From Basidiobolus meristosporus CBS 931.73 (lineage: Eukaryota; Fungi; Basidiobolomycota): a stretch of DNA of 64,000 nucleotides. Made by a program: the position numbers and the translations under genes. Below, piece by piece: positions 13,066-55,963 of this stretch. How positions within the stretch are numbered: position 1 is the first letter of the stretch; the number at the start of each line of letters is the position of its first letter. Under the pieces are notes generated by a model. That model had not been told where the DNA came from. It searched no databases and worked only from the letters and a program-made list of their open reading frames with translations. The stretch covers positions 1 to 64,000 of the forward strand of contig MCFE01000087.1 in the NCBI GenBank assembly GCA_002104905.1, written 5' to 3'.

Positions 13066-13076
13066 CGAATATAGAG

Positions 13077-13147
13077 GCGCCGTTAGTACAGTGGTAGAAT
13101 TGAAGCTTCCCAAGCTTTAGCCCCGGGTTCGATTCCCGGACGGCGCA
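13077..13147 (+). tRNA. tRNA-Gly(CCC) copy 2
   Basis: Identical 71-nt sequence to copy 1. Confidence 0.95.
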
Positions 13148-13395
13148 TACCTCTGAACCATAATTTTTGAGAAACTCTAGGACCTCATACGGCCAAGATA
13201 AGGCTAGGCGCATGCACCATTAAATCTGTCATCATTTCATACAAGTTAGATCAGACCTCATATGACTAATGGACACGAACTGCCGGAAATCGGAAATCAT
13301 TCAACTAATGATTCACGGACGCATGCACCAACTTCGGCTCTTCGAAAATGATTTTATGCGGTTGATGCATATGATTAAAGAATTAATATTAGCTC

Positions 13396-13519
13396 TAACA
13401 CTCAACATTGTGAGTTTTAGGCTAAGGTTGCGGGGGTAGAGTTACAATAACAAAAATATCGGGAAACAGAAAAGGAAGATGTGCATGGGGTGAATGTGAA
13501 GAAATGCCCAAGAATCACG
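13396..13519 (-). mobile_element. Truncated LTR type G remnant
   Basis: Homologous to the tRNA-proximal end of LTR-G (12928-13065); ends AATCACG 11 bp before tRNA copy 3. Confidence 0.65.
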
Positions 13520-13530
13520 CGAATATAGAG

Positions 13531-13601
13531 GCGCCGTTAGTACAGTGGTAGAATTGAAGCTTCCCAAGCTTTAGCCCCGGGTTCGATTCCCGGACGGCGC
13601 A
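13531..13601 (+). tRNA. tRNA-Gly(CCC) copy 3
   Basis: Identical 71-nt sequence; T5 run downstream. Confidence 0.95.
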
Positions 13602-14661
13602 AAACCCCTTCATTTTTCACATTCTTATTCCTCAATTCTCTGTTACGCATTCCAATTTTGTGAAACTTTAGAGGTTACTGAGAGTGGGATCCTCGGCTTG
13701 AGGTGTCAATAAATCCTAGAAAAGTTATTCATCACATGTATATACCAACACTGTGTATTATATATATGTCTTTCCTGGCATGAGATGGCCATCTCCCTAA
13801 CTTCGATTTAACACCGCTGATCTCAAATCCATTAATTGCCAATATGATAATTGAAAGTTTGTTAATCCTGGTTAACTGTATTTCAACAAATCTAGTTTGC
13901 GTATTCATCCAGGCATCTTCGCACTTGGTTAGAGTTACAGAATTCTTAAGCTAAAGAACGGTTCACCTGAATGTCGAATGAAACGCTTCAGCTATAAACA
14001 CTGGACTCCCTTTGTGCATATATAGGTCTATATTTTCTGCTTACACTGATAGTGATTGTATTCTACATATATGGATCCACTTGCGAATATGAGAAAATAG
14101 GGAACGTTGGTGATTGCGAATTTATTGGTGCTTTTGGTCAAGGATTAAATTACTCAAAACTTTCTAAATCTTCTAAAGCTTGGAATATGCAATGCAGATT
14201 TGGAGTAATTAGAAAAGCATCAAAGTAATATTAGGAGTATCTTGATGAAGGGAAAACGAATGGTACGGCTGCATTGTTGGCATGATGAAGTTGTCTATGT
14301 CTGGAATTCGTCATTGACCAAGATTTGTGCATTTTATTCCACCAATTTTGTCTCAGAATAGGTAACTTGCACTTGACCTTCACTAATTCCAAGAATTAGC
14401 CAATATTTCATAAACGAAGTCTTAAGTAAATAACTCATAGCTTAGCAATAAGCGAAGTAGAATCTTGCGTTACATGAATGGTATAGGTGTAAACTGAATA
14501 TTTACAACAGTAAACTCGCAATGTGTGCCCAATTTTTGCAGTATAAAGGCCACGGTGAAAGTTGTCTGATATATGACAAATTTGGTTGAGTGCATATTTG
14601 TAATCCTTGGTCAGTGATTACCCATACATGTGGATGATTCCACTACAATAATAGTGCAGAT

Positions 14662-14731
14662 TTATCATTGGTAAGGCGGAGAAATTGAAGTTTCCCAAGT
14701 TTAAGGCCACACATGATTGCTGGATGGTAGA
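14662..14731 (+). pseudogene. Heavily decayed tRNA-Gly(CCC) relic
   Basis: AATTGAAGTTTCCCAAGTTT (about 14683-14702) aligns to AATTGAAGCTTCCCAAGCTT. Flanks are collinear with many transitions; acceptor and T arms are destroyed. Confidence 0.55.
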
Positions 14732-15337
14732 AGTTTTGCATTTCCCTATGAAGCATTGTTCCTTACTATGTAAGTGCTTGTTCGATCAAAACCTTGTACA
14801 AGTATATATACTACCTTTACACCCAACAGATCATCAAGTAAGAATAACATAATCTTCTTGCTCCTCAGTCAATCCAGTATCTCCAATACTGCCACAACAG
14901 GCCCAACGTCGCTGTCTGTCCAACATGGAAATGTAATCTAATTGTAGGAAAGAAAGACATGTAGCATGCATGTGAATATAATATAGTGAATTCATTCACT
15001 TTTAGATAGAAGTACATTCTTTAACTCAAGAAGTTTGTAATTGCAAAAAACAATCAAGAGTGAGAGGATCAATGCAGATAATGATAATCATCAGGTTAAC
15101 AGTTCTCATATTGGCAGCAATCCAGTTTGAGAGGTATGGTGTAAGATAAAATATCAGGGACATGACTATTGTATTTCCAAAAATATTACTGTATAAGGAG
15201 CATAATTTCAGATGGGTAAAGATTCTTCTAGTGTTGAAACATGTAGTGAATACGCATTCTAAAAATGAAGCCATGGGTATACAAATCATTACATCCTTGG
15301 AAAATTACCACAGTATTGGTTCAAAAAAGAAATGATT

Positions 15338-15408
15338 TGCGCCGTCCGGGAATCGAACCCGGGGCTAAAGCTTGGGAAGCTTCAATTCTACCACTGTACT
15401 AACGGCGC
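15338..15408 (-). tRNA. tRNA-Gly(CCC) copy 4
   Basis: Identical 71-nt sequence; T6 terminator. Confidence 0.95.
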
Positions 15409-16454: not shown

Positions 16455-16525
16455 TGCGCCGTCCGGGAATCGAACCCGGGGCTAAAGCTTGGGAAGCTTC
16501 AATTCTACCACTGTACTAACGGCGC
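16455..16525 (-). tRNA. tRNA-Gly(CCC) copy 5
   Basis: Identical 71-nt sequence. Confidence 0.95.
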
Positions 16526-16535: not shown

Positions 16536-16856
16536 TGTTATAGAGTAAGGAGTCAGTCGATGTCAAGTGACATCAACGCGTACAAAGACGACTTAGCAGC
16601 CAGGGAAAAGCAAAACAAGACAAATCACCAGACTCACAATAAGGTATAAATACCAATCAAACAATCAAATAAAGGGAGAAGTTTGGTTAGAAGCAGGAAG
16701 AGCGGTAGAAACGAATATTATTTTGAATATATTTCTACTAGTCACCATCCTAAACTCTGAAGAGATATTCTTACACTACTCCATCGAATCTACGAGATAA
16801 CATACACGTTATCTAATTCCGTACTCTTTAAAGGCATTACTCTTCAGGTACGTAAC
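16536..16856 (+). mobile_element. LTR type A (about 320 bp)
   Basis: Starts TGTTATAGAGTAAGG 10 bp upstream of tRNA copy 5; collinear with 40155-40476. Confidence 0.85.
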
Positions 16857-17601
16857 GAATCGATTAACGACCACGATAGACCTTAACCAAAATATGATGA
16901 TTTCAAAACCGAATTTTACAGTGCATTAGGATGTAGCGCCTATATCTTTCAGTTTATGTAAAAGATAGTAGTTCTCACTATACGTAGTATAAATTGGTGC
17001 TCTGAGTGTGGCTCATAAGTAGCTGCAATAAGCAAGGAGCTACACCATTGCTATCTCTGTGTGAAGTTTTGTAGTAGCTTAGATACATAATTCTGGCATT
17101 TTTACACATGTTATAAACTATTTTGAATGGCAAGTTCTCTTCTGCATTAGTTGAAGGTTTAACGATATCCCAATACGGTGTAACAATGGTTGGAGCATGT
17201 TTTAACTGACTTGTAATCCACTTCATATTCACACTGTGGAAATCTAGCTGAGAACAAATCAATAAACCTGCTGGCCATTCATTGGTCGAGCTAAGGGCTA
17301 TGGAAGTTGTGGAGTAGATCATTGTTGATGGCTGATCATAGCCCCCAGAGTACATTGGTGTTACTAAAAGGAGATTTCCAATTTCCAAATAATGGCCGCT
17401 TAGTACCAGAACCCTCTATCACCAGTTTCAAATAGACAGCGTGAGCTAAGACTCATGAACCCAGGGTTTATAAATAGGATTCGGATTAATGTCAAGAAAC
17501 ACACAAAGATTCATAGTGCAAAGAAATATATGTATAACGATGAAAAAATTGACAAAAAACAACACAACAGGGTGTTGACTGGCTGTGGTAGCTTTGTATA
17601 A

Positions 17602-20718: not shown

Positions 20719-20789
20719 TGCGCCGTCCGGGAATCGAACCCGGGGCTAAAGCTTGGGAAGCTTCAATTCTACCACTGTACTAACGGCGC
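20719..20789 (-). tRNA. tRNA-Gly(CCC) copy 6
   Basis: Identical 71-nt sequence. Confidence 0.95.
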
Positions 20790-20800: not shown

Positions 20801-21297
20801 TGTAATTCTTGGGCATTTCTTGCCATTCATCCCATGCACATCTTCCTTTTCTCTTTCCCAATATTATGGTTACTCTTATGATCCTACCCTCGCAACCATA
20901 GCCTAAAACCCACACTTACTCACAATGTTGAGTGTTAAAGCCACATACACTCTTGCCTTTTGGTTCACGTGCACTCTTACGATTTCCTGCCTTTAACCCT
21001 TTCTTTTATCCCATCTGGTTGGCTATTTGCTCTGATTGTAGTCATGTTGTATTTGTTGTAGGTCAAGTTATTGCGCTCCTCCCCATCAACAGACACGAAG
21101 GCCTAGTTTGTGAGAGTACCGCACCCAACTCGATCCTTGAATCTTCAATTTATATACGGCCTAGTGCTTAATCGACGACTTCCTACACGGAACCATCCTC
21201 ACATAGGTGCTTTTAGATAAATTGTGAATAAAATGCGTTGTAAGGAATGGTTGGGATGGATGGGGCCAACATATACTCCATGCGAAATCCCATCACA
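20801..21297 (+). mobile_element. LTR-like element, type G (497 bp)
   Basis: TGTAAT...ATCACA; begins 11 bp upstream of tRNA copy 6; followed by tg-TGGGATCACCCATG. Confidence 0.65.
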
Positions 21298-21595
21298 TGT
21301 GGGATCACCCATGATTTCGGCGAAATTTGCTGATATCATGGAGTTATGGATAATATCCGATTTTTGATAAACAGATAGGCGTATGTTTTTCTCAGCATTA
21401 TGATGAAGTAACGCTTTATGGATTAAACTATTATAGGCTTCTCCACAATTTGCTGGCCGGCGTAACTGTTAAAACTGTAGACAACAGCCACTAGCTCTAA
21501 CATTGATATCCATCTGGCCCGATCAAGAATCAGATGGCTATAATAAGGGCAAGCCTCCTTACAAGAGAGGATGATACTATCAATTGGTATTTATT

Positions 21596-22022: not shown

Positions 22023-22720
22023 CTAATCAGTGGGGGCGAATGGATATCTATCGTCTTGTATAATCTCCTGTTGTTGCTATCTATCGTCTTTTATAATCTC
22101 CTATCTTCTCTACTTACGTCAACTTCTGCCCATGACGAAGCATTTGTGATGTAAGTGAGAAATAGATTCTAGTGAAGGGTTAGGGTAAATCATAGCTATG
22201 TGGCTTATGTATTGATATGGGATGACGTAGGGAAACTTGGGCTGGGTAGATGGGGTCTTACTCGAAATATAAAGAGCTGACATTGGGAGATTTGCAATCT
22301 TTCACGTTCAGCTTTTCCCAGATTTCAATTGGAATATAATCTGATACCTATGCTACGCTATATAAATAGGTGGATCAAAGGCGTATCGCTTAGAGTCAGA
22401 AAAAATTCCTCGGCAACTACTATTTTGGGACTCCATGAGTGACTCTCACAACTGCTGGCCAGTTTGCCGCGATCATAGGTTGGATAGCATGGTTTGTTGG
22501 CAATTGTTACCTTCATTTCTGACATACAATATGGATCAATCATAACGGAGGAAACTCGGCTTGACGACATTCCCAAACCGAAAATGGAATTTTATCAACT
22601 GCTTAATTAATCTCTTATTTTAACTCACCACGCCAATGCTATCACATTATCTACCATGATTGGGGTTTCAGCTATATAAGAGAAGAACGGTTGAGGGATG
22701 TTTTTCACAGCATCGTCAGA

Positions 22721-25093
22721 ATGAAAAATTTACACTCAGTTACTTTCTTCTTACTAGTCATAGGAAACACTGCGTTAAGGAGTGCATCTGCTCCATTTCC
22801 AGGTAAGGGAGATTGGCTTTTCCTCCTCAAGAGTTTCGATCATAATCTGTACCTTGCAGGAACTAGCGATGTTGTCAACCCTTTGAGAACTGACTCAACT
22901 CTAAGTCAAACCGATTCATCTGATAAGACCGATACATCGTTTGACTCTACTGATCGCCAAACTTCCGAACCAACTTGGACTTCACGTACCTCAAAATCGG
23001 TCGTTGACTCAACAACCGATGTCCTCACTACCTCGTCCACATCTGAGAGACCTTCTCAAATTTCTACCACAGGCAACGAAACCCCTACCTCGACATCAAC
23101 AACTCAAGACCCAACAGACAAATCTCCCACTCCTTCAGCAACTGAAGAGCCAACCGCTACCACCTCAGATCCACCTACAAGTCGTATGACAACAGACACA
23201 CATTCGGTTTCTTCAGTAGACTCTACTACATCAGCTTCACCCACCAGCCAGGATCCAACAGATATTTCCACTCCCGCGACAACCATAGAGCCGACCTCTA
23301 CCACCTCAGACCCACCCACAACTCAGGTACCAACGGACCCTACTACCTCAGCTTCACCTACCAGTCAAGATCCAACAGATATTTCTACCCCTATCACGAC
23401 CGAAGAGCCGACCCCTACCACCTCAGACCCACCCACAACCCAGATGCCAACGGACCCTACTACCTCAGCCACACCCACTAGTCAAGATCCAACAGATATT
23501 TCCACTCCCGCAACAACCATAGAGCCGACCCCTACCACCTCAGACCCACCCACAACTCAGATGCCAACGGACCCTACTACCTCAGCTTCACCTACCAGTC
23601 AAGATCCAACAGATATTTCTACCCCTATTACGACTGAAGAGCCGACCTCTACCACCTCAGAACCACCCACAACTCAGATGCCAACGGACCCTACTACCCC
23701 GGCCTCGCCCACTAGTCAGGATCCAACAGATATTTCCACTCCCGCAACAACCATAGAGCCGACCCCTACCACCTCAGACCCACCCACAACTCAGATGCCA
23801 ACGGACCCTACTACCTCAGCTTCACCTACCAGTCAAGATCTAACAGATATTTCTACCCCTATTACGACTGAAGAGCCGACCTCTACCACCTCAGAACCAC
23901 CCACAACTCAGATGCCAACGGACCCTACTACCCCGGCCTCGCCCACTAGTCAGGATCCAACAGATATTTCCACTCCCGTAACAACCATAGAGCCGAACCC
24001 CACGACCTCAGGGCCGCCCACCACTCAGGTACCAACGGACCCTACTACCTCAGCTTCACCTACCAGTCAAGATCCAACAGATATTTCTACTCCTATCACG
24101 ACCGGAGAGCCGACCACTACCACCTCAGACCCACCCACAACTCAGATGCCAACGGACCCTACTACCCCGGCCTCGCCCACTAGTCAAGATCCAACAGATA
24201 TTTCCACTCCCGCAACAACCATAGAGCCGAATCCCACTACCTCAGGGCCGCCCACCACTCAGGTACCAACGGACCCTACTACCTCAGCCTCACCCACTAG
24301 CCAAGATCCGACAGATATTTCCACTCCCGCAACAACCATAGAGACGACCCCTAGTACCTCAGATCCACTCACCAGTCGCAGTCCAACAGTAATCTCCACA
24401 CCTTCAGTGACTGAGGAGCCAACTCCAACCACATCAGGCTCACCTACAACTGAGGTACCAACAAATACTCCATCAATTTCATCAATTATATCTATCACCC
24501 CAGATCCATCTATCACTCAGAGTCCTACAGAAATTACTGTTACTCCCTCAACAACACTAGAGCCTACACCCACTACATCGGTACCAACAGATACTTCAGA
24601 TATATCCACAAATCCGTCTACTACACTTGACTCATCTTCAACTCAAGAACCCTCACCAAGCCCCTCTGATACGTCTAAATCTGATATCTCAACAACTGAG
24701 GGCACAGAAACAGTCACATCCAATACTTCGATTTCAACAAACACACAGCCTTCAAGTACAACATCGCTAGAGCCGAGCACCTACTCTGCTTCATATACCA
24801 CGCCAACGTCAGAAACAAGTATAGAAACTAGTAATACTCCCACTAGCACGTTGGTCACCACCGCATTGAGTTCGTTTAGTGGAAGACCTGTGAGCACTCA
24901 ATCCGACGGACAGGTTGTGAATGAGGTTATCGTTACAGCCACCACGACCATTGATGGAGTACAAACGGTTGTATATTCAACCAGTAGAGTGACCGGGCGT
25001 CCATCTTTTCAACTAAATAGCGGCAATACTCACCATCTCTCACAAATCGCATTCACCATTTTTATTGTGGTTTCGATGTACTTTACCATTTAG
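22721..25093 (+). CDS. Secreted Ser/Thr/Pro-rich mucin-like protein, probable GPI anchor
   Basis: N-terminal signal-like segment, probable in-frame 57-nt intron 22803-22859, long T/S/P repeats, hydrophobic C-terminal tail IAFTIFIVVSMYFTI. Confidence 0.85.
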   Translation: MKNLHSVTFFLLVIGNTALRSASAPFPGKGDWLFLLKSFDHNLYLAGTSDVVNPLRTDSTLSQTDSSDKTDTSFDSTDRQTSEPTWTSRTSKSVVDSTTDVLTTSSTSERPSQISTTGNETPTSTSTTQDPTDKSPTPSATEEPTATTSDPPTSRMTTDTHSVSSVDSTTSASPTSQDPTDISTPATTIEPTSTTSDPPTTQVPTDPTTSASPTSQDPTDISTPITTEEPTPTTSDPPTTQMPTDPTTSATPTSQDPTDISTPATTIEPTPTTSDPPTTQMPTDPTTSASPTSQDPTDISTPITTEEPTSTTSEPPTTQMPTDPTTPASPTSQDPTDISTPATTIEPTPTTSDPPTTQMPTDPTTSASPTSQDLTDISTPITTEEPTSTTSEPPTTQMPTDPTTPASPTSQDPTDISTPVTTIEPNPTTSGPPTTQVPTDPTTSASPTSQDPTDISTPITTGEPTTTTSDPPTTQMPTDPTTPASPTSQDPTDISTPATTIEPNPTTSGPPTTQVPTDPTTSASPTSQDPTDISTPATTIETTPSTSDPLTSRSPTVISTPSVTEEPTPTTSGSPTTEVPTNTPSISSIISITPDPSITQSPTEITVTPSTTLEPTPTTSVPTDTSDISTNPSTTLDSSSTQEPSPSPSDTSKSDISTTEGTETVTSNTSISTNTQPSSTTSLEPSTYSASYTTPTSETSIETSNTPTSTLVTTALSSFSGRPVSTQSDGQVVNEVIVTATTTIDGVQTVVYSTSRVTGRPSFQLNSGNTHHLSQIAFTIFIVVSMYFTI
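23224..24393 (+). repeat. Coding minisatellite: 10 x 117 bp (39 aa)
   Basis: Unit TTSASPTSQDPTDISTPxTTxEP...PTDP recurs every 117 bp (e.g. 23341, 23458). Confidence 0.95.
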
Positions 25094-38444: not shown

Positions 38445-38515
38445 GCGCCGTTAGTACAGTGGTAGAATTGAAGCTTCCCAAGCTTTAGCCCCGGGTTCGA
38501 TTCCCGGACGGCGCA
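38445..38515 (+). tRNA. tRNA-Gly(CCC) copy 7
   Basis: Identical 71-nt sequence; T6 terminator. Confidence 0.95.
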
Positions 38516-39005
38516 AAACTTTTCTTTTTTATACCAATACTGTGGTAATTTTCCAAGGATGTAATGATTTGTATACCCATAGCTTCATTTTTAGAATGCG
38601 CATTCACTACATGTTTCATGAGGCCCACTAGAGGACATCTTAGGTAAGCTTGGCAACCAATTTTGATACGTAATATGTTTCATATACGTTGATAGATGTA
38701 CTGACAAACCAATTCTGACAATATGATTATTCCATCTAGAGCCGGACCAAAAATCTGGGTTGGTTCGGAATGTAAGTGCAGAGTGAATTCTACCTACTAA
38801 GAGCAGTATCCATACTACTTGAGTAAAGAACCATTATCAGGAGAGACCGATTGCACAAATCCACATCCAAACCTTACCACGGCTAGCAAAAATCTTGGCT
38901 TGCCATATTTCATGACCATGGATTCTGTCCATACCTCTGGGTCCATCGACATATTTGGGTGAAGCCCACAAAAATCCCGCCTCCCAAATCATGGGTGATC
39001 CCACA

Positions 39006-39500
39006 TGTGATGGGATTTCGCATGGAGTATATGTTGGCCCCATCCATCCCAACCATTCCTTACAACGCATTTTATTCACAATTTATCTAAAAGCACCTAT
39101 GTGAGGATGGTTCCGTGTAGGAAGTCGTCGATTAAGCACTAGGCCGTATATAAATTGAAGATTCAAGGATCGAGTTGGGTGCGGTACTCTCACAAACTAG
39201 GCCTTCGTGTCTGTTGATGGGGAGGAGCGCAATAACTTGACCTACAACAAATACAACACGACTACAATCAGAGTAAACAGCCAACCAAATGGGATAAAAG
39301 AAAGGGATAACGGCAGGAAATCGAAAGAGTGCACGTGAACCAAAAGGAAAGAGTGTATGTGGCTTTAACACTCAACATTGTGAGTAAGTGTGAGTTTTAG
39401 GCTATGGTTGCGAAGGTAGGATCCTAAGAGTAACCATAATATTGGGAAAGAGAAAAGGAAGATGTGCATGGGGTGAATGGGAAAAAATGCCCAAGAATCA
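39006..39500 (-). mobile_element. LTR-like element, type G, with about 200 bp of adjacent internal sequence to about 38800
   Basis: Collinear with 12569-13065; ends about 10-12 bp upstream of tRNA copy 8. Confidence 0.65.
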
Positions 39501-39512
39501 AGCAATATGGAG

Positions 39513-39583
39513 GCGCCGTTAGTACAGTGGTAGAATTGAAGCTTCCCAAGCTTTAGCCCCGGGTTCGATTCCCGGACGGCGCA
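39513..39583 (+). tRNA. tRNA-Gly(CCC) copy 8
   Basis: Identical 71-nt sequence. Confidence 0.95.
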
Positions 39584-40074: not shown

Positions 40075-40145
40075 TGCGCCGTCCGGGAATCGAACCCGGG
40101 GCTAAAGCTTGGGAAGCTTCAATTCTACCACTGTACTAACGGCGC
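40075..40145 (-). tRNA. tRNA-Gly(CCC) copy 9
   Basis: Identical 71-nt sequence. Confidence 0.95.
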
Positions 40146-40154: not shown

Positions 40155-40804
40155 TGTTACAGAGTAAGGAGTCAGTCGATGTTAAGTGACATCAACGCAT
40201 ATAAAGACAACTTAGTAGCCAGGGAAAAGCAAAACAAGACAACTCACCAGACTCACAATAAGGTATAAATACCCATCAAACAATCAAATAAAGGGGAAGT
40301 TTGGTTAGAAGTAGGTAGAGCGGTAGAAACAAATATTACTTGGAATTTATTTCTACAAGTCACCATCCTATCCTTTTAGCAGATATTCTTACTCTACCCT
40401 GTCAAATCTACAAGATAACATACATGTTATCTGTTTTTGTACTCTCTAAAGGATGTTACTCTTCAAGTACGTAACAGAATTGGTGCTCACAGCAGGGGTA
40501 GTATTAAACAAAAGTAATCTACCTCTCACAAGAAGAACGGGAGATGATCACGCTACAATGGGAACAAAGATTGGCCATGATTAGCAATTTCTCCAGATAC
40601 CAGACCAAGGATCCTTTTGCTTGGCTACGGGAATGTGAAGTCGGTCAAAAGGCAAATCAATGGGATCTAGTAGAACTTCCAATGATGGCAGGTGCTTATA
40701 TGAAGGATCTGGCAGCTACTTGGTATGAAGAAAACAAAGGACTTTTGACAGATTGGGAAACCTTTCAGCAAAGATTTAAAGAAAAATACATCACAATGGC
40801 AAGA
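40155..40804 (+). mobile_element. 5' end of LTR retrotransposon type A: LTR 40155-40476, putative PBS, gag fragment
   Basis: TGTTAC...GTAACA LTR 9 bp upstream of tRNA copy 9; TGGTGCTCACAGCAGGGG at 40481; gag-like DPFAWLRECE...AATWYE...DWETFQQRFKEKY. Confidence 0.8.
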
Positions 40805-41088
40805 AAAAACGGATAACATGTATGTTATCTTGTAGATTTGACAGGGTAGTGTAAGAATATCTATTAAAAGGCTAGGATGGTGACTTGTAGAAATATATTC
40901 CAAGTAATATTTGTTTCTACTGCTCTTCCTACCTCTGACCAAGCTTCCCCTTTACTTGATTGTTTGATTGGTATTTATACCTTCTTGTGAGTCAGGTGAT
41001 TTGTCTTGTTTTGCTTTTCCCTGGCTACTAAGTTGTCTTTGTATGTGTTGATGTCACTTAACATCCAGCAACCCCTTACACTGTAACC
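40805..41088 (-). mobile_element. Inverted, truncated LTR type A
   Basis: Reverse-complement homology to 40155-40430. Confidence 0.8.
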
Positions 41089-41882
41089 ACATTGAATAAA
41101 TATAAGCAAGAAAAAGTTGCTAATCTCATTTATTGAGTTAGGTACAAGAATAATATCAAGTAATATAATGAATATATTTATTGCTCATATCAACCCAACC
41201 TCATGAGAAGTCATTCTGGAAAGTAAAAATGATCTTTGGACTAGGCTAGAGTGATTGCTGTAAATTTTGGGGTCTTCCTAAGCATATTTTACATGTGCTT
41301 TTTGCCAAGACCTAGTAAAGGGGCTTTTGGACAGTTAATCAAGTTCTCATTCTGGGCACCTGGCATTTTGGTGAAAAAATATTCATAACAGCAACAATGA
41401 AACATAGCTTTGCAATCTCAGTACAATACTGTGAGAGCTAGGGCCCTGCAGTCAATGCACCTATTTCTTGATTTCTTTTCAATGGCATCTTAGATGTAAA
41501 TTGAGACCAAAGACCAACTGGTAATATATGAATGAATAAACACCAGTCTATTTTGCAACAATAGTTGCTAATAGGTAATGAAGGATTTGTATTCATTTCG
41601 GTTAGTGTTATTCAGAATGTTTAGTAATCATAATTGTTCGCACTTTCTCTAGCTTACATCAAAGGTAAGTATACTTAGGGGTTAAGACAGACCAGGGAGC
41701 GGTGGTTCAAATTTGACACCAGTTCCCTTAAAGAAACACTGGACCTCTCTTATGGCTTATTTCCCAAACCCTCTACTTGAATAAAACCATTCTTAGTACC
41801 CACTATCAATATCTACTTGCGCTGGGAACCACAACACATCCTCATCTGTGATTGTGTACTTGCACAAATGAACACCCATTCT

Positions 41883-42248
41883 CCCCTTCTCTTATCTCGT
41901 GTGATTGGCTATTTACTCTGATTGTAGTCGTGTTGTATTTGTTGTAGGTCAAGTTATTGCGCTCCTCCCCATCAACAGACACGAAGGCCTAGTTTGTGAG
42001 AGTACCGCACCCAACTCGATCCTTGAATCTTCAATTTATATACGGCCTAGTGCTTAATCGACGACTTCCTACACGGAACCATCCTCACATAGGTGCTTTT
42101 AGATAAATTGTGAATAAAATGCGTTGTAAGGAGTGGTTGGGATGGATGGGGTCAACATATACTCCATGCAAAATCTCATCACATGTGGGATCATCCATAA
42201 TTTGGGAGACGGGATTTTTGTGGGCTTCACCCAAATATGTCGATGGAG
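41883..42248 (+). mobile_element. Partial LTR type G plus adjacent leader
   Basis: Matches 20995-21297 and, reverse-complemented, 38942-39005; no adjacent tRNA. Confidence 0.7.
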
Positions 42249-46273: not shown

Positions 46274-46279
46274 TTGTAA

Positions 46280-46499
46280 TGTTACGCTCGTAGAGGGAAA
46301 TCCCGGCTAAACAGTAAATCTCTTGGGATTCCGGTGAGAGTAAGAGTTGATCCAGGATGCAAGGGAGAAGATACTTTATTCGTGTACAAGTCTATCTGTA
46401 ATAGTTATTCATGGTGTGCTTTATATGCAGTGTGCTAAATTAAGTTTTAGTGATAAATTAGTAATGGATAGGGTTTCTGGTATACTTTACCCTGTAACA
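46280..46499. mobile_element. Solo LTR type D
   Basis: TGTTAC...TGTAACA; homologous to 46828-47136. Confidence 0.7.
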
Positions 46500-46501
46500 A
46501 G

Positions 46502-46824
46502 TGTTATGTGCTTAAAGAGTAATGTCCTTTAGAGAGTACAAAAATGGATAACGTGTATGTTATCTCGTAGATTCAACGGGGTAGTGTAAGAATATCTCTT
46601 CAAAGGTTAGGGTGGTGACTTGTAGAAATAAATTCCAAGTAATATTTGTTTCTACCGCTCTTCCTGCTTCTAACCAAACTTCTCTCTTTATTTGATTGTT
46701 TGACTTGTATTTATACCTTATTGTGAGTCTGGTGATTTGTCTTGTTTTGCTTTTCTCTGGCTACTAAGTTGTCTTTGTACTCATTGGTGTCACTTAACAT
46801 CAAGTGACTCCTTACTCTGTAACA
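46502..46824 (-). mobile_element. Solo LTR type A
   Basis: TGTTAT...TGTAACA; reverse complement of 40155-40476. Confidence 0.85.
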
Positions 46825-46827
46825 AGT

Positions 46828-47136
46828 TGTCATGCTCATTGAAGAAAATCTTAGTTAAGCAGTGTATCTTTTGGGATTCTGGATAGGGTAGAGTTGATCC
46901 AGGTTGCAAGTAAGAAGATACTTTATTTGTGTACAAACCTGTCTGCAATTGTTATTCATAGTGTGCCTTTTATACTGTGTGTGCTAATTAGGTTTCAGTG
47001 ATAAACTAGTGATAAATTGATGCTAGATAGGGTTTTGGTCAGAGTAACTCTATTTGATTGCCTTATATCCATACAGATGGTTGTCTTTTGCAGGGGGCCT
47101 ACCACTTATCCTAGTGGTATATTTTACCCTGTAACA
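46828..47136. mobile_element. Solo LTR type D (longer variant)
   Basis: TGTCAT...TGTAACA; shares the GAGTTGATCCAGG...GATACTTTATT core with 46280-46499. Confidence 0.7.
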
Positions 47137-47139
47137 AGA

Positions 47140-50100
47140 TGTTATGATATTCAGGTCTGGTTCTCCCACTTTGCTGGTGTAACAAGACCTGTCTTTATTT
47201 TTACCACAGGATCTGCTTTTAACACAATTCCCAATTGCTTGCATAGACTATTGTCTCAAGTTTGCCCAACAGTGAGCATATAATGAAGCATTATCACATG
47301 GTGACATAACTATATATGTTGTGATCATCTGAATGTTCTGGTTGGGTTTCAGACTGATAACATTTTCCCCTTCTTCAGTTGATTCTTCTCCTAAAGAATC
47401 TTCAACTTTAAAATACCAAATTTTCTTTTCAGGAAATGGTCCCCCTTGAAGGGCTACTTGGTGGACCAATGTTATCTGTATTTGCTCATCAAGGTCTACT
47501 AGCTGATATGTTGAAAACAGCATAACTCTTCTAATTGTGAATGGTCCCATCCAGTATGGTTGAAACTTCTTGTGGTCTTCCTTACGCATTAAGACTCTTG
47601 TTCCTATCTCAAATTCTTGACTGCTTGCATTCTTGTCATTGTTGTAAAATTTTGTAATTCCTCCTAAATACTCACCTAACTTAGTCACTTAGAGCATTAC
47701 CTTCAAATCCTAGAGAATACTGACCAAATTCCTTGTTGGGATTTACTTCAAATATTTTCACCAAAATATCAGGTACCCAGAATATGAGAATTAGAAAAGT
47801 TGTCCAAACAGCCCCAAACTTTGCACAGATGTTCTTGAGACCTTCCTAACCCTATTTTACATGTTTGTTATGCCAAGACCATGTAAAAGTATTAATACTA
47901 CTTTTACATTCAATAAATCATCAAGTGAAAACCACATAATCTACTTGTTCTCCCAATCACTTCCAATATCTCCAAGACTCTTACAACAGTCATAACATAA
48001 GATCATTTGCTGGCCTTGGTTTTCAAGTTGCTTCAGCACTTCTTCCCTCCTATGATCTAGACTTTCCAATTCTCTGATCTTTCATTCTGCTTCATCATCT
48101 TCATCATCAAGGTCCCAAAGATCTGGATGCAATGTGTCACCAGGTATCATGGGTTCCCTCCCATAGACAAGATAAAAGGGCAAGTATCCTGTAGCTATGC
48201 AAGACTGTATTTGACATGCAAATAGTGCTTGCCGTACAAAATCATCCCATTTATGTTGTGCCCCCTGAACATAAATTGTCAACATTTGGCTAAAGAGTCC
48301 ATTGAAGTGTTCATTAACCCCATTTGTTCTGGGGTGAAAGGCAGATGTTTTTAAATGTTTGATCCCCTGTAATTCTATGTAATTCTTCATGATTCCTTCA
48401 ATGAAGTTTTGTCCTCTATCTGTGAGAATTTCCTCAGTGCATCCAAACTGTAAAGTATTATCTTATACAGAAAAATTGCTACTTCTTTTGCGGTAGCTTT
48501 TCTTATTGATTGGGCAATTGGCCACTTTGTTGTGTGGTCAATTGCCATTAATATCCCCTTGTTACCTCTCCTAGTGTTTGTAAGTCTTCCAATGAAGTCT
48601 AAACTCCAGCTACTAAATGCTGGGACTTGGGGTAACAAATGTAGTGATGCAGCCTGCTGCTTCCTGCTTTTTATTAACTGACAGTTAGGGCAGAATTGTA
48701 TGGCCAGTGCAATATTTTCTGCCATATTTGGCCACTGGTTAGCATACACAGACAATACAGAATTTCTTGGTCTTGATATTTTCTGCACAATACTTCTTCA
48801 TTAACTTGGAACTTATCAAGCTCTTATAATACTAACTCATTGACTTCTATAGTTGTTCCCTCAGGGAAGGTCTGGTTGCAACAGTACTCCACCTACTGCC
48901 CAAGATAAGGCATTTGTTGTCAAATAAAAGATTCTTGTGAAATCAGTACTTTTCAATACTGGTATGTTCAATAAAGCTTGCTTCAACCCTTGGGATGCTA
49001 CTTTACAGTTTGCTTCTGGAATTATTCTTGCCACTACATCATCACTGAATGTAGGTGTACTCCATGAGACATAAGTTTTCTTTTTAGCTAAGACAGTGTT
49101 TTATGCTGCTAATTTGACATCTTGGCTCTTTGTTGGTTGGATTAATAACTTGAGTGTCTTTACCAATACTTCAGAGATGTAATTATCACTTGATCCAATG
49201 TCTAAAATAACTTTCACTGGTTGACTACTAATTTCCACCAGCCACTGAATTACTGGCTTTGTTGGTTCTTCTATTTGCCAATTAAACTCTTCTACCATGT
49301 GTAAGATATGTTGTTCTTTTATTGCATTCAACATTTCTGCAGAGTCTTCTACTTCCACTTTGAACAGGTTATCCTTCTTACACTTAGAACATTCATAAAA
49401 TTGATGGCCTTCTTTTTTGCAATTGGAACACAGATTGTGTTTCATGCAATATTCTTTAGTTTTTTTCTTATTTTGATCCAATGTTTTGGCAGATTCTTGT
49501 CCTTCTTTTCTACCTGCTTAGATATTGCCAAACATAATCTGTTTATATCTTTCTGCCATCATATGTGCTTCTCTAAATGTTTGTGGGTCATGAAACTCCA
49601 CTTCTTTTCTTGTTGATTTTTTTAAACCACAAACATAACAATCAAGTATCTCATCCTTAGAGATACTGTCAATATCCAACAGCAGATTTTTGAAGTGGCT
49701 AGTATAACTACTAACTGTTCCTTTTTGGACTAACTTAGCAAGTTTATATCTGGCTTGCTTTGTAGCTGTTATTGGTTTAAACTCTGTTACTGATTCTTGT
49801 TTGAATTCCCTCCATATCTCAATTTCATCTTCATGACCTTCATTAGACCTTCTTAAATACAATCTCCACCACAATAATGCTCTTCGGATCAGACTTGAAG
49901 TGTATTCAACTTTCTGAGACTGACCAACATTTGTGAACTTCATATACTTCTCAACTTGAAATATCCAAGTGTCCACATTTGATTTTCCTTCATAAGTTTC
50001 AGGCTTTGTCAACTTTACCCAATTAGATCCTGGACTTCCATATGCCTTCAAAATATCTTCTTTTGTAAGCAAATCTTCTTGTGCACTATATTGTGCCTTC

Positions 50101-50473
50101 AGCCACTGGTTCTCTTCCTTTAATTCTTGTAATTGCTCTCTTAGCAATGCATTTAAGTCTTCACCAGGGATACTACCTTCAGTACTTTTACTAGTACTCA
50201 TCTTCTCTTCTTTTTCCAGAGGATCTACAATGAATTGTTGCTACCAAATGCTATGATATTCAGGTCCGGTTCTCCCACTTTGCTGGTGTAACAAGGTCTG
50301 TTTTTATTTTTAGCGCTGGATCTGCTTTTAACACAATTCCCAACTGCTTGCATAGACTATTGTCTCAAGTTTGCCCAACAGTGAGCATATATTGAAACAT
50401 CATCACACGGTGATATAACTACATATGTTGTGATCATCTGAATGTTCTGTTTGGGTTTCAGACTATTGTAACA
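47140..50473 (-). mobile_element. Degenerate Ty3/gypsy element B (LTRs 50249-50473 and 47140-47362; gag, Zn knuckle, PR, RH remnant, IN; RT deleted)
   Basis: Paired LTRs of about 225 bp; PBS TGGTAGCAACAA (iMet-like); PPT before the 3' LTR; CSNCKKEGHQFYEC; VILDIGSSDNYI; WSLDFIG; WMGPF. U3 end lies 11 bp from tRNA copy 10. Confidence 0.9.
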
Positions 50474-50484
50474 AAAATGTAGAG

Positions 50485-50555
50485 GCGCCGTTAGTACAGT
50501 GGTAGAATTGAAGCTTCCCAAGCTTTAGCCCCGGGTTTGATTCCCGGACGGCGCA
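50485..50555 (+). tRNA. tRNA-Gly(CCC) copy 10, T-loop variant (TTTGA), possibly impaired
   Basis: One C>T at the invariant B-box C56. Confidence 0.85.
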
Positions 50556-51121
50556 TCACCTTTTTCATTTAATCAATGGCATTCCTCGAACCGTCACACT
50601 ACCTCCCAAATTTTGGAGCAACTTTAGAATTTCCAGTAGAAGGGAATCCATGCACTTGTACCATTTCAACGCCGGTTTTCCGTACCATCAAAGTGAAGAG
50701 ATTTAAATTTATGAATCATCAATCTTCCGAAAACACACTGGACCAATTGAAATAATAGGTCGAAATGTGTATGTTTGTAATAGAGTAGTAAGTTAAAGAG
50801 CGGAGTGGCCTTGGTATTCCGGTAAACTTAAGGATCAACTGAGCACAAGTTCCATCAGAGCCCTAAAACTAGGAAATATTGTGGAAACCCACAATAATAG
50901 CAGAAATCATTCCAAATCTTGAAGGAGCTATGTAATTGACAAGAAAAATGAAGTTGGTGTATTTTGAGCACAAACGGGTCAATGCTGAGATCACCCAACT
51001 AGGCTTTGATCCACTGGTGATTTTACAGTTTCTCCAAATGTTGTGTTTTGATGGATATGATATACTCTTGGTTGTACGGTATTCATTTTCGGAGTGCCCG
51101 TAAACGGGAGCAAAAGATTGT

Positions 51122-51192
51122 TGCGCCGTCCGGGAATCAAACCCAGGGCTAAAGCTTGGGAAGCTTCAATTCTACCACTGTACTAACGGCGC
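51122..51192 (-). tRNA. tRNA-Gly(CCC) copy 11, two C>T changes, possible pseudogene
   Basis: Sense AGCCCTGGGTTTGATT versus consensus AGCCCCGGGTTCGATT. Confidence 0.8.
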
Positions 51193-51203
51193 CTCTGTAT
51201 TTG

Positions 51204-54200
51204 TGTTATGAAATCCAGGCCAGTTCCCCTCCTTCTGTTTGGTGTAACAAGGTCTGTCCTTTATTTTAGCGTAGGATCTACTTTTTATACATTTCTCAAT
51301 CATTTGCATACAACTTGTCTTACTTTAGCCCATCAGTCTTTGATCATCTTTGATGATTTTTGGTGTTGACGCATCTCTATATGCAACAACTTGCTGCCTG
51401 TTCTGGTTGGGATTCAGACTTTCATAACATTTTCCCCTTCTTCAATTGATTCTTCTCCTGAAGAATCCTCGTCTTTATGGTACCAAACCTTCTTTTTGGG
51501 GAATGGTCCGCCTTGCAATGCTATTTTTAGTCTGTCTTGGTGGACTAGCGTTTTCTGAACTTGGCCACTCATATCTACGAGCTGATATGTTGAGAATGGC
51601 ATTATTCTACTTACAACAAATGGGCCCATCTAGTACGGTTGAAACTTCTTGTGGTCCTCCTTTTGTATTAGAACCTTTGTTCCAACTTCCAGCTCTTGGT
51701 CACCTACATTTTTATCGTATCGCAATTTCATTTGTTGACCTTGACTTTCAAGTCTTTTTATCACTTCCTCTTGCTTGTGGCCTAACGCCTCCAATTCTTG
51801 TATTCTCCATTCTGCTTTATTGTATTCATTGTTGAGATTCCAGAGGTTTGGCCGTACTGTGTCACCTGGGATTTTTGGCTCTTGTCCATATACTAAGTAG
51901 AAGGGTGTATACCCTGTAGGTACATGGCATCATATTTGACACGCAAAAAGTGCCTGTTGCACGGATTCATCCTGTTTGTGGCATGCACCTTGGACATAGG
52001 TTGTTAGCATTCTACAAAACAACCCATTAAAACGTTCATTCACCCCATTAGTTCTAGGGTGAAATGCCAATGTTTTTAAGTGTTTAATTCCTTGCATCCT
52101 AACATAGCTTCCCATTACGCCTTCAATAAAGTTTTGCCCTCTTTTGGTAAGTATTTCTTCTGGGCAACCAAACTGTAACAGTATTTCTTCATACAGGAAC
52201 GTAGCTACCTCTTTTGCTGTAGCTCTTCTTATTGCTTTAGCAATTGGCCACTTTGTGGTGTGGTTTATAGCAGTTAGTATCCATTTGTTACCCTTTTTGT
52301 TTCTGGCAACCTTCCAATGAAGTTTAAACTCCACCAACTAAATGCTGGGACTTGTGGTAATGGGTGAAGTTGTGCCTCTTGTTTTCTTCCCGGCGTGGCT
52401 AACTGACAGTTGGGGCAGAACCAAATAACTTTTGCAATATCTTGAGTCATATTTGGCCACCAGGCTTGAGGCTTCAGTTAGTTTAAGACTCCTTGCACTC
52501 CTAAATGGCCATATGCCTGATGATATTTGCAGATTAGATCTGCGCGCAATATATGTGGGCAAAACAGGATTTCTGGGTCTTGTATTTTTCTGTACAAAAC
52601 TTCTTCATTTATGCAAAACTTGTCTGCTTCCTGTCTTACTAATTCTTTAACTTCTGCAGGGATCTCTTCTGGGAAGGTTTGCTCCTGTAGGTATTGAGGT
52701 ATTAGAGTTGGCCAATCCAACACATCTATCATGAGGATTGTGCTTTCTATTATCTGTTCTTGTGTCTCCTCTTCCATCCTGGAGAGTGCATCGGCTACTT
52801 TATTTGAGCTACCTTTTATGTAGGTGATCTCAAAATTGAATTGTTGCAAGTATTCTATCCAACGCAGCATTCTTCTTGATAAGGTTTTTTGTGTATTAAC
52901 AAATCTTAGACTTGCATGATATGTCTGGATAATACACTTTTTTCCTTCTTGGTAGCATCGCCACACTTTCAAACAAACAATTATTGCCAATAACTCTTTT
53001 TCGTGTGTTGGATAATTATGTTCTGCTGCTGAGAGTTTTCTACTTTTGAACGCAATTGGATGCTCCTGTTTGTCCTGATATTGTGACAGTACTCCCCCTA
53101 CGGCCCATAGTGAAGCATCGGTTGTTAAATAGAAGGTTTTTGAATAATCCGGGCTTTTCAACACTGGGGCGTTTACTAATGCAACCTTCAACTGTTGGAA
53201 TGCAACTTCACATATTTTTGACCAAGTGCACATCCTTTCTTGCTTTAGTAAGTCCATCAGTGGCGCTGCTATCTGTGCAAAGCCTGCTATAAACTTTTGG
53301 TAATATGATGCTAACCCTAGAAACAATTGTAGCTTGGTTATCGAGTTTGGGTATGGCCACTCTTCTATTATCTTTACTTACTTATTGTCAACTTTCAGGC
53401 CTTCTGTGGTAATCACATGTCCTAAATATTCAATTTCTTTTGTATTGAACTGACATTTTTCCTTGTTTGCTACTGATTTTTCTCTTTGCAAAATATCAAA
53501 GACAATTCACAGATGGTCTTGATGTTCTGCTAGTGTTTTGCTATATATTAATATATCATCTAGGTATACTAATATAAATTGATCTAGATATTGATGAAAA
53601 ATGCTATTCATCAATGTCATAAAGGTGGCTAGTGCGTTGGTGAGTCCAAAACTCATTACCACAAACTTGTAATGGCTGTAGCATGTGCAAAATGCTGTTT
53701 TCTCAATATCACCTTCTTGAATTCAGATTTGGTAGTAGCCACCTTTCAGATCTATCTTTGAAAACACCCTTGCACCATTCAGGTTGTCAAACAGTTTGTC
53801 AATTTGGGGGAGTGGGCACTTGTTTTTGATTGTTGCTGAATTTAGGGCTTGATAGTCCACACACAAACAAAGAGACCCCTCCTTCTTCTTAACAAACAAT
53901 ACCGGTGCTTCAAACAGCAATTTACTTGGTCTTATATAACCTTTCTCTAACAATTCAGCTAATTGTTTTTTTAATTCTTGTAGCCCCAATGGACTCATCC
54001 AGTAAGGCTGTTTTGACACCAGTGAGCTGTTTTCTAGATAAATCTTGTGATCCACACTTCTTTTTGGTGGTGAGCCTTTGAGTACTCTGAACACATCTTG
54101 GTACTCATCCAAGATACTTTGGATATCCTGCATGTTGTTGGTTTACTTGGTGTCTTCATCTAGAATGCTGTATATAAATTCAACATTGCTTTTGTCTACT

Positions 54201-54901
54201 TTCCTTGCTGCTTTAGAAAGTTGTGACTTTCTAATTACAAGTACCTCCTCTTCTTTTAGCAGTTCTGTGTTTGGTTTACAGATTACCTGCCACCTCCCTT
54301 CCTTATATACTGCCACTTCTTGCATTTGCCAATTGATGACAGGATTTTGTTTGTACAATTTTAGAATTTTAGGTATTTTTCAACCTGAAAATCCAAGAAT
54401 CCACATTTGACTTCCCATCAAATGTATCAGGCTTAGCTAACTTTACATGACCGGATTCCAAACTTCCATATGCCTTCAGAATATCTTCTTTAGTAGGCAA
54501 CTCTTCCTGTGCACTATACTGTGCTTTTAGCCACTGGTTCTCTTCTTTCAATTCTTGTAATTGCTCTTGCAGCAATGCATTAATGTCTTCACCAGGGCTG
54601 CTTTCTTTAGTACTCTTGCTAGTACTCATTTTCTTGTAGTTTGGAGGATTATTTGTTGTTTTGCTGCTACCAAATGTTATGAAATGCAGGCCAGTTCCTG
54701 TCCTTCTGTTTGGTGTAACAAGGTCTGTCCTTTATTTTAGCGTAGGATCTACTTTTTATACATTTCTGGATCATTTGCACACAACTTGTCTTACTTTAGC
54801 CCATCAGTCTTTGATCATCTTTGATGATTTTTGGTGTTGACGCATCTCTATATGCAACAACTTGCTGCCTGATTCTGGTTGCAATTCAGACTTTCATAAC
54901 A
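51204..54901 (-). mobile_element. Degenerate Ty3/gypsy element C (LTRs 54675-54901 and 51204-51429; gag N-term, RT, RNase H, IN; gag core and PR deleted)
   Basis: Paired LTRs of 226/227 bp; PBS TGGTAGCAGCAA (54661-54672); PPT GAAGAAGGGGAAA; RT YLDD region; RH TDASLWAVGGVL; stops and frameshifts. Confidence 0.92.
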
Positions 54902-54907
54902 AAAATA

Positions 54908-55234
54908 TGTTACATACTTAAAGAGTAATGTCCTTTAGAGAGTACAAAAAGGGATAATGTGTATGTTATCTTGTAGATTTGATGGGGTAGTGTAAGAATA
55001 TCTCTTTAAAAGGTTAGGGGGGTGACTTTGTAGAAATATATTCAAGCTAATATTTGTTCCTACTACACTCTTCTGCCTATAACCAAAACTCCCTTTTTAT
55101 TTAGTTGTTTGTTTGGTATTTATACCTTATTGTGAGTCTGGTGATTTGTCTTTGATTTGCTTTTCCCTGGCTACTAAGTCATCTTTGTATGCGTTGATAT
55201 CACTTAACATCGAGTGACTCTTTACTCTGTAACA
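54908..55234 (-). mobile_element. Solo LTR type A with 5-bp TSD AAATA
   Basis: AAATA at 54903-54907 and 55235-55239; ends 10 bp upstream of tRNA copy 12. Confidence 0.9.
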
Positions 55235-55244
55235 AAATACAGAG

Positions 55245-55315
55245 GCGCCGTTAGTACAGTGGTAGAATTGAAGCTTCCCAAGCTTTAGCCCCGGGTTCGA
55301 TTCCCGGACGGCGCA
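55245..55315 (+). tRNA. tRNA-Gly(CCC) copy 12
   Basis: Identical consensus 71-nt sequence. Confidence 0.95.
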
Positions 55316-55881
55316 ACGATCTTTTGCTCCCGTTTACGGGCACTCCAAATGTTGTGTTTTGATGGATATGATATACTCTTGGTTGTACGGTATTCATTTT
55401 CGGAGAAACTGTAAAATCACCAGTGGATCAAAGCCTAGTTGGGTGATCTCAGCATTGACCCGTTCGTGCTCAAAATACACCAACTTCATTTTTCTTGTCG
55501 ATCACATAGCTCCTTCAAGATTCGGAATGATTTCTGCTATTATTGTGGGTTTCCGCAATATTTCCTAGTTTTAGGGCTCTGATGGAACTTGTGCTCAGTT
55601 GATCCTTAAGTTTACCGGAATACCAAGGCCACTCCGCTCTTTAACCCACTACTCTATTACAAACATACACATTTCGACCTATTATTTCAATTGGTCCAGT
55701 GTGTTTTCGGAAGATTGATGATTCATAAATTTAAATCTCTTCACTTTGATAGTACGGAAAACCGGCATTGAAATGGTACAAGTGCATGGATTCCCTTCTA
55801 CTGGAAATTCTGAAGTTGCTCCAAAATTTGGGAGGTAGTGTGACGGTTTGAGGAATGCCATTGATTAAATGAAAAAGGTGA

Positions 55882-55952
55882 TGCGCCGTCCGGGAATCGA
55901 ACCCGGGGCTAAAGCTTGGGAAGCTTCAATTCTACCACTGTACTAACGGCGC
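55882..55952 (-). tRNA. tRNA-Gly(CCC) copy 13
   Basis: Identical consensus 71-nt sequence. Confidence 0.95.
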
Positions 55953-55963
55953 CTCTGTATTTG

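Follow-up and report, generated by a model that had tools for sequence, protein, structure and literature searches.

Retrotransposon termini 9–11 bp upstream of tRNA-Gly(CCC) genes in Basidiobolus meristosporus point to polymerase III-linked targeting

Integration beside genes that RNA polymerase III (Pol III) transcribes is the textbook case of a transposon safe harbour, and the retrotransposon Ty3 of Saccharomyces cerevisiae is spaced 16–19 bp from the mature 5′ ends of tRNA genes. To our knowledge, such targeting has so far been dissected only in ascomycete yeasts and in Dictyostelium. Here, we analyse a 64-kb stretch of the fungus Basidiobolus meristosporus CBS 931.73 (contig MCFE01000087.1, positions 1 to 64,000; this whole stretch is called the window), in which long terminal repeat (LTR) retrotransposons of several families recur directly upstream of clustered tRNA-Gly(CCC) genes.

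In Ty3, a long linker places the C-terminal domain (CTD) of the integrase on TBP, linker and CTD serving as the platform for TFIIIB, and a vestigial chromodomain contacts Brf1 (PMC8632968). Tj1 of Schizosaccharomyces japonicus has 13 of its 17 insertions within 12 bp upstream of a tRNA gene, and ten LTR families of this host cluster with its tRNA gene clusters (PMC4600332). Among Ty3/gypsy elements, DGLT-A of Dictyostelium discoideum inserts 13–33 bp upstream of tRNA genes (PMC5911963) and uses its RNase H domain to contact Tfc4, a subunit of TFIIIC (PMC6101501); Tyl3, Ylt1 and Tyl6 of Yarrowia lipolytica and beta/Tca8 of Candida albicans insert a few bp upstream of tRNA transcription start sites (PMC5911963). 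A 2018 review places tRNA-targeting elements in ascomycete yeasts and Dictyostelium only (PMC5911963). The 2009 genome paper on Rhizopus oryzae reported frequent co-localisation of Ty3/gypsy LTR elements with tRNA genes (PMC2699053), in a chromosome-scale figure only, without junction distances, orientation, target duplications or element families. Our full-text literature searches found no nucleotide-level description for early-diverging fungi, Basidiobolus or Mortierella. The original prediction for this locus, that no description is known outside yeasts and dictyostelids, holds at the nucleotide level in the literature searched, but coarse co-localisation in Rhizopus had already been published.

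LTR termini in one slot upstream of tRNA-Gly(CCC)

The window contains 13 tRNA-Gly(CCC) genes (ARAGORN; all 13 also in Rfam). LTR types were defined by comparing the window with itself and reading the ends of the repeats, and junctions were measured by taking each upstream region in the orientation of its tRNA and matching it to the family-specific termini. A terminus ending in ..ACA lies 11 bp from the mature 5′ end at copies 2, 3, 6, 10, 11 and 13; at copies 5, 8 and 12 the distance is 10 bp, and at copy 9 it is 9 bp. These values reproduce exactly the ten distances listed in the original prediction, and reading the LTR ends returned the same orientations. The leader common to copies 2–13 comprises only the last 9–10 bp, (A)AATAYAGAG, with divergence further upstream, and homology between these copies stops precisely at the LTR start.

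A verified LTR terminus lies 9–11 bp upstream of 6 of the 13 genes (copies 5, 9, 10, 11, 12 and 13). Four families (A, B, C and F) use this same slot in both orientations: the U3 end faces the tRNA for A at copies 5, 9 and 12, for B at copy 10 and for C at copy 12, and the U5 end faces it for C at copy 11 and F at copy 13. With about 24 LTR termini in 64 kb, the chance expectation is 0.015 termini in the 3-bp slot, and the probability of six or more is about 1e-14. We consider it probable, and hold this with good confidence, that the LTR families insert position-specifically near tRNA genes by targeting linked to Pol III.

Five LTR types at ten tRNA genes had been predicted. Types A, B, C and F stand, but the fifth, G (copies 2, 3, 6 and 8), was rejected as an LTR. 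Its distal end, TCCATCG.., is identical in two copies with differing flanks and does not begin with TG; it has no partner LTR and no internal region of its own, and tblastn with the full Gag-Pol P0242 found no coding remnant. It also encloses a full-length match to Rfam family RF01496, Afu_182 (model positions 1–195 of 195; E 1.6e-9; 66 bits, the gathering score being 65). Three such matches occur in the window, at 39056–39247 (+), 21056–21247 (−) and 41942–42133 (−); two lie about 265 bp upstream of a neighbouring tRNA, on its strand, and the third is in a truncated G with no adjacent tRNA. By these features, G is most likely the native upstream flank of the tRNA-Gly(CCC) family, copied by segmental duplication, and copy 7 retains a diverged homologue of its proximal end. 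With G as native flank, 4 of the 10 listed junctions drop out, leaving four LTR families at six tRNA genes.

Both the alignment and the minimum free energy (MFE) fold of the Afu_182-like region give a hairpin-hinge-hairpin-ACA arrangement like that of H/ACA small nucleolar RNAs (snoRNAs). Its MFE fold is not more stable than those of shuffled sequences (z −0.55), and the identification rests on the covariance-model score. The unit looks like a conserved H/ACA-like snoRNA gene upstream of tRNA-Gly(CCC) that was multiplied along with the tRNA. Annotators should be cautious here, as the conserved “..ACA + 11 bp” before some tRNA copies would be host sequence with a snoRNA-like gene.

Family A has LTRs of about 322 bp with ends TGTTAC..GTAACA, and four full and two partial copies are present in the window. 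A sequence resembling a primer-binding site (PBS) begins 4 nt after the copy at 40155–40476 and marks it as a 5′ LTR; because this PBS and an open reading frame (ORF) follow the copy, the A end that faces the tRNA is U3. The internal ORF has no Pfam match, and its BLASTP match to the F gag (E 0.36) is not significant.

Elements B, C and F have the features of Ty3/gypsy elements. Their paired LTRs have TG..CA ends (TGTTAT/TGTTGC..AACA) and a PBS, TGGTAGCA(A/G)C, lies 0–3 nt past the 5′ LTR. The TGGTAGC.. type of PBS is, we take it, initiator-tRNA-Met-like and also the type found in Ty3. Element C retains a decayed protease, reverse transcriptase, RNase H and integrase (PR-RT-RH-IN) region, colinear with residues 432–1383 of P0242 by tblastn, in which integrase follows reverse transcriptase; a polypurine tract (PPT), GAAGAAGGGGAAAA, precedes its 3′ LTR. 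The same type of tract adjoins the 3′ LTR of element B, which lacks RT and RNase H. Element F carries an intact ORF (56108–58108, −) for a 666-aa Gag-integrase fusion without PR, RT or RNase H. Both B, with a decayed gag(-PR)+IN layout, and F are deletion derivatives that kept gag plus IN, possibly non-autonomous ones mobilised in trans. Pfam domains found across the window's elements are Ty3_capsid, RVT_1, RT_RNaseH, Integrase_H2C2 and rve.

The internal regions of B, C, D and F are 72–81% identical at the nucleotide level and have the TGGTAGCA.. type of PBS in common. By this comparison they group as one related Ty3/gypsy lineage, and only A, with another PBS, stands apart. Given that relationship, the targeting would be mostly one inherited trait and not five independent arrivals. 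The predicted guild of many families is accordingly kept in part: several LTR families do occupy one narrow slot, with repeated hits and stacking, but most of them are close kin.

Table 1. Coordinates of tRNA genes, LTR elements and other features in the window
Feature	Position	Strand	Remarks
tRNA-Gly(CCC) copy 1	8317..8387	−	upstream flank unique, without LTR
tRNA-Gly(CCC) copy 2	13077..13147	+	native G flank upstream, not LTR
tRNA-Gly(CCC) copy 3	13531..13601	+	tandem duplicate; upstream is 122 bp of G proximal end
tRNA-Gly(CCC) copy 4	15338..15408	−	paralogue of copy 7; sequence past −9 unique
tRNA-Gly(CCC) copy 5	16455..16525	−	LTR-A at 10 bp upstream
tRNA-Gly(CCC) copy 6	20719..20789	−	copy 2 and its G flank, duplicated inverted
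tRNA-Gly(CCC) copy 7	38445..38515	+	upstream 36 bp is native flank, diverged, G-like
tRNA-Gly(CCC) copy 8	39513..39583	+	upstream is native G flank
tRNA-Gly(CCC) copy 9	40075..40145	−	A element 5′ LTR at 9 bp upstream
tRNA-Gly(CCC) copy 10	50485..50555	+	element B 5′ LTR at 11 bp upstream
tRNA-Gly(CCC) copy 11	51122..51192	−	element C 3′ LTR (U5 end) at 11 bp upstream
tRNA-Gly(CCC) copy 12	55245..55315	+	solo LTR-A at 10 bp upstream, beyond it element C 5′ LTR
tRNA-Gly(CCC) copy 13	55882..55952	−	element F 3′ LTR (U5 end) at 11 bp upstream
LTR-A at tRNA 5	16536..16857	+	U3 faces tRNA; next GAAT.., resembling PBS region of the 40155 copy
A element	40155..40816	+	5′ LTR 40155–40476; PBS-like TGGTGCTCACAGC; 90-aa ORF fragment 40544–40816; U3 faces tRNA 9
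LTR-A, truncated copy	40805..41089	−	
LTR-A in stack	46502..46824	−	order D, X, A, X′, B; 2 bp from LTR X end; no adjoining tRNA
Solo LTR-A	54908..55234	−	perfect 5-bp target duplication AAATA; U3 faces tRNA 12
LTR-A remnant	58359..58515	+	U3 end 2 bp from element F outer end
Element B	47140..50473	−	LTRs 47140–47363 and 50249–50473, 92% identical; PBS TGGTAGCAAC; gag-PR and IN remnants
Element C	51204..54901	−	LTRs 51204–51429 and 54675–54901, 96% identical; PBS TGGTAGCAGC; PPT
Element F	55964..58356	−	LTRs 55964–56153 and 58175–58356, 91% identical; PBS TGGTAGCAGCGAC
Element D 5′ LTR	46075 to ~46279	−	PBS-like sequence at inner side
LTR X	46280–46499	−	directly after element D 5′ LTR
Unit G at tRNA 8	38942..39502	+	Rfam Afu_182 match at 39056–39247
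Unit G, other copies	12539–13065; 20801–21327; 41876–42247	+; −; −	last copy truncated
Trehalose-phosphate synthase ORF	58761–60548	−	100% identical to B. meristosporus CBS 931.73 protein

Elsewhere in the window, an 800-aa ORF at 22691–25093 (+) has no Pfam match and contains tandem 117-bp (39-codon) repeats at 23219–24372. It lies in a stretch strongly skewed towards C, with a GC skew of −0.24 to −0.35 over 22–28 kb. Two of the window's proteins, looked up by exact match, gave no record.

Relatives in other genomes and the role of the target sequence

We found no relative of the F integrase above 50% identity. In Entomortierella parvispora (GCA_020891255.1), a Ty3/gypsy family with an integrase 41% identical to that of F has 12 annotated members, of which we examined four copies (L008–L011), comparing the LTR pairs in two. 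The LTRs are 608 bp long and the compared pairs are 99.8% identical, the Gag-Pol has 1626 aa with an ORF intact in at least some copies, and the family is young. Perfect 4-bp duplications (GGAA, TGGA, ATTT and AAGT) frame all four copies. Each copy has the U3 end of its 5′ LTR upstream of a tRNA gene, at 15 bp from Leu(AAG), 34 bp from Asn(GTT), 14 bp from Leu(CAA) and 15 bp from Ser(AGA), and a single fixed orientation makes element transcription divergent from the tRNA.

A metagenome scan with the integrase alignment returned 80 loci, one of them with a tRNA; most contigs stop at or near an LTR and hardly any covers a 5′ flank, which keeps this count from being evidence of absence. In that one soil metagenome contig (L044), the LTR TGTTATGG..CACAACA terminates exactly 11 bp upstream of tRNA-Gln(TTG). 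A different arrangement occurs in Parasitella parasitica (L001, 14258–14525), where the putative 3′ LTR of a related element and the 3′ end of a tRNA-Gly(GCC) gene are about 1 bp apart, which puts the T-run terminator of the tRNA inside the LTR. Contigs labelled as a rotifer, Rotaria sp. Silwood, contain the F integrase's closest full-length relative (47% identity), with LTRs 99.4% identical; it could reflect a contaminant fungus or horizontal transfer.

These relatives bear on the first rival explanation, in which the integrase prefers a DNA sequence or structure, either the A/T-rich (A)AATAYAGAG motif or the ends of resident LTRs, over Pol III factors. The Basidiobolus targets are indeed all A/T-rich (AAATA, AATAT, AAAAT and CAAAT) and fall in one conserved 10-bp leader, and LTR ends abut 2–6 bp apart in a stack without a tRNA. 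The E. parvispora duplications and flanks, however, have no common motif, yet the insertions lie 14–15 bp from the tRNA in three of four cases, and the 11-bp spacer of the soil contig, GAAATCGTAAT, is unrelated to the Basidiobolus leader. Abutting LTR ends are moreover the expected trace of repeated insertion at a single fixed site. We judge a sequence or structure preference to be unlikely.

Duplication, stacking and independence of the insertions

In a second rival, segmental duplication would have multiplied one or two ancestral insertions, with units of tRNA and LTR copied and then shuffled through recombination, so that the junctions are not independent. Duplications do abound. Copies 2 and 6 belong to a single 844-bp inverted duplication with 98.1% identity (12539–13382 versus 21327–20484), as had been predicted, and the four G junctions represent one duplicated native flank. 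An inverted pair with 96% identity (39504–39641 versus 40154–40017) is formed by tRNAs 8 and 9, including about 60 bp of flank downstream. The G unit at tRNA 8 and the truncated G at 41876–42247 resemble two arms left by an inverted duplication that took in G, the tRNA and its downstream flank; the truncated G would then be the displaced flank of tRNA 9, with the A element inserted 9 bp upstream of that gene. The A LTRs at tRNAs 5 and 9 have about 28 bp of similar downstream flank in common. The cassettes carrying tRNAs 10–11 and 12–13 are likewise inverted copies, 93% identical (50466–51208 versus 55971–55230).

The same cassettes nevertheless speak against this account, since their homologous tRNAs carry unlike LTRs: B at tRNA 10 versus F at tRNA 13, and C at tRNA 11 versus A and C at tRNA 12. 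Because paralogous tRNA copies bear different LTRs, at least five insertions are independent. Four unrelated LTR sequences in the same 3-bp slot by themselves need at least four insertions, and the spacing varies (9, 10 and 11 bp). At tRNA 12, LTR-A has its own perfect target duplication, lying 6 bp inside the end of the older element C LTR, which was 11 bp from the tRNA before LTR-A arrived; the predicted landing of A at 10 bp and its displacement of C are confirmed. Beyond the window, independent relatives in E. parvispora and the soil contig are placed in this way at five further tRNA species. Multiplication of so few insertions is, in our estimate, quite improbable as the origin of the junctions.

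Further joints fit serial insertion by targeting. The outer end of F lies close beside the U3 end of the LTR-A remnant, which places the landing of F between tRNA 13 and an older A; from this arrangement, F probably displaced the remnant from tRNA 13. Element C lacks a target duplication and is bordered on either side by a tRNA gene at a distance of 11 bp. Two insertions at two paralogues, followed by recombination between them, would be the simplest account of its origin. In the stack at 46075–47139 (the 5′ LTR of D, then X, A and X′, with B following), LTR ends lie 2–3 bp apart; insertions that arrived one after another upstream of tRNA 10 may have left this stack by pushing older LTRs outward.

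Other contigs from the same organism that align over 50201–56200 contain joints that stem from other loci: behind a B-like LTR end come 5 bp and then the start of a C-like or A LTR; these 5 bp are either four unmatched letters plus one flank base or five unmatched letters. As read from these alignments, such joints appear to be the signature of stacked insertions at other loci. Many of the contig pieces fall on LTR-A, with a summed depth far above that of the unique spacer, though depth does not measure copy number. Palindromic duplication and recombination between elements seem to drive growth and rearrangement of the tRNA-Gly(CCC) cluster. We considered and rejected the idea that the elements carry or retro-copy the tRNA genes: the LTRs beside these genes are of four different kinds, their homology runs past the terminator and the PBS is not that of tRNA-Gly.

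A last rival, passive co-accumulation of tRNA genes and LTRs in a gene-poor, recombination-poor and possibly pericentric region, finds some footing in the retroelement graveyard of decayed and nested copies at 40–58 kb and in the centromeres of S. japonicus, where tRNA clusters occur together with LTR elements (PMC4600332), but we regard it as most improbable because passive accumulation gives neither single-nucleotide spacing nor a target duplication at that very spot, and the S. japonicus clustering is itself attributed to targeted integration. All three rivals fit the data worse than targeting linked to Pol III.

Integrase architecture, proposed mechanism and known systems

An AlphaFold2 model of F residues 200–666 (467 aa; pLDDT 82.8) shows an N-terminal extension domain (NED), an NTD (N-terminal domain), a CCD (catalytic core domain), a helical linker and an SH3 CTD. 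The linker contains a 40-residue helix at 321–360 and a beta-barrel follows at 371–422 (query numbering); beyond the SH3 fold, there is only a 45-residue disordered tail, mostly with pLDDT below 50. A Foldseek search with this model returned the integrase of prototype foamy virus (PFV) first and that of Ty3, taken from the intasome bound to TFIIIB, next (7q5b_B, 445 columns, TM 0.62). At about 20% identity to Ty3 integrase, the F sequence is no closer to Ty3 than to PFV.

The elements had been predicted to lack a chromodomain, and three observations agree: no Pfam Chromo match was obtained in the integrase even at E ≤ 1, the model ends in the SH3 domain and its tail, and in elements B and C no more than about 20 codons separate the SH3 domain from the start of the LTR, leaving no room for one. 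The C-terminal integrase chromodomain that defines chromoviruses is thus absent from the Basidiobolus elements. According to the model, the linker and CTD part of a Ty3-like TFIIIB platform appears to be present and the chromodomain absent. The E. parvispora integrase has about 165 additional C-terminal residues, for which a single-sequence fold was uninformative (pLDDT 47) and Atlas gave scores of 0.77 or less.

In the proposed mechanism, intasomes would most likely dock on the Pol III pre-initiation complex at a tRNA gene, with TFIIIB as the leading candidate partner, as for Ty3, and TFIIIC as the alternative, as for DGLT-A. The element ends would be joined to a 5-bp target located roughly at −11 to −5 relative to the mature 5′ end, in either orientation, and the tRNA gene would be left intact. 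The families may compete for the site, each new insertion driving older LTRs outward into stacks, and recombination among elements and identical tRNA genes could then rearrange the cluster. We infer the position of the transcription start relative to the insertion site, as well as the generality of this habit across the Basidiobolus genome. Such targeting would account for the local architecture, in which tRNA-Gly copies are framed by LTR stacks and inverted duplications.

Several observations weigh against Pol III-linked targeting or its generality. All targets in the window belong to one tRNA species in one rearranged cluster. A clean target duplication is present at one Basidiobolus insertion only (A at tRNA 12); it is absent at B and C, and F has ATTTG versus ATTGC. 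The superfamily of LTR-A is not established within the window, and the A copy at 46502, X, X′ and D sit in a stack without an adjoining tRNA. Among the relatives, no tRNA was found within up to 10 kb of the Rotaria-labelled L002–L004 or the Lichtheimia L005 elements, and an ENA relative (L006) ends 92 bp upstream of tRNA-Phe. Lastly, the missing Brf1-contacting vestigial chromodomain means that the Ty3 contact is not copied in full.

We tentatively extend the reading of targeted integration beyond this locus, as a possible though doubtful generalization: position-specific insertion upstream of tRNA genes would be old and widespread among early-diverging fungi, as a trait of a Ty3/gypsy lineage that has no Brf1-binding chromodomain and relies on a Ty3-like platform of linker and SH3 domain. 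Its range may take in Zoopagomycota (Basidiobolus), Mortierellomycotina (Entomortierella), probably Mucorales (Rhizopus) and uncultured soil fungi. If this is true, the habit would be the Ty3 mechanism in its ancestral form or else an independent third solution next to those of Ty3 and DGLT-A, and tRNA clusters driven by such elements could mark special chromosome regions, like the S. japonicus centromeres. In the integrase tree, the tRNA-adjacent rows are scattered and the grouping of F with E. parvispora is weakly supported (81/89), so the tree allows no choice between one and several origins of tRNA targeting. The nucleotide-level cases in Basidiobolus and Entomortierella carry the phenomenon into early-diverging fungi. 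Whether fungi inherited Ty3-like targeting from a common ancestor or reached it by convergence can now be tested, as can the way in which an integrase works without a Brf1-binding chromodomain.

Ty3 of S. cerevisiae is among the closest known systems. Both are Ty3/gypsy systems (in Basidiobolus for B, C and F) with a 5-bp duplication, seen in Basidiobolus at the A insertion at tRNA 12 only, a window of a few bp upstream of the tRNA, either orientation and an intact target gene, and both integrases have the order NED-NTD-CCD, long helical linker and SH3 CTD (PMC8632968). In contrast to Ty3, the Basidiobolus integrase is without the vestigial chromodomain that contacts Brf1, and the elements have their LTRs 9–11 bp from the mature 5′ end. 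DGLT-A resembles the Entomortierella family in position, its range agreeing with the 14–34 bp seen there, but it has an amoebozoan host and makes its TFIIIC contact via RNase H. The Yarrowia and Candida elements differ in that all are in ascomycete yeasts. For several families in one niche at tRNA clusters, S. japonicus is the closest parallel; its Tj1, however, is Tf1-like with self-primed reverse transcription in a host of the Ascomycota, whereas the elements of Basidiobolus, in the Zoopagomycota, have a tRNA-type PBS by the 5′ LTR.

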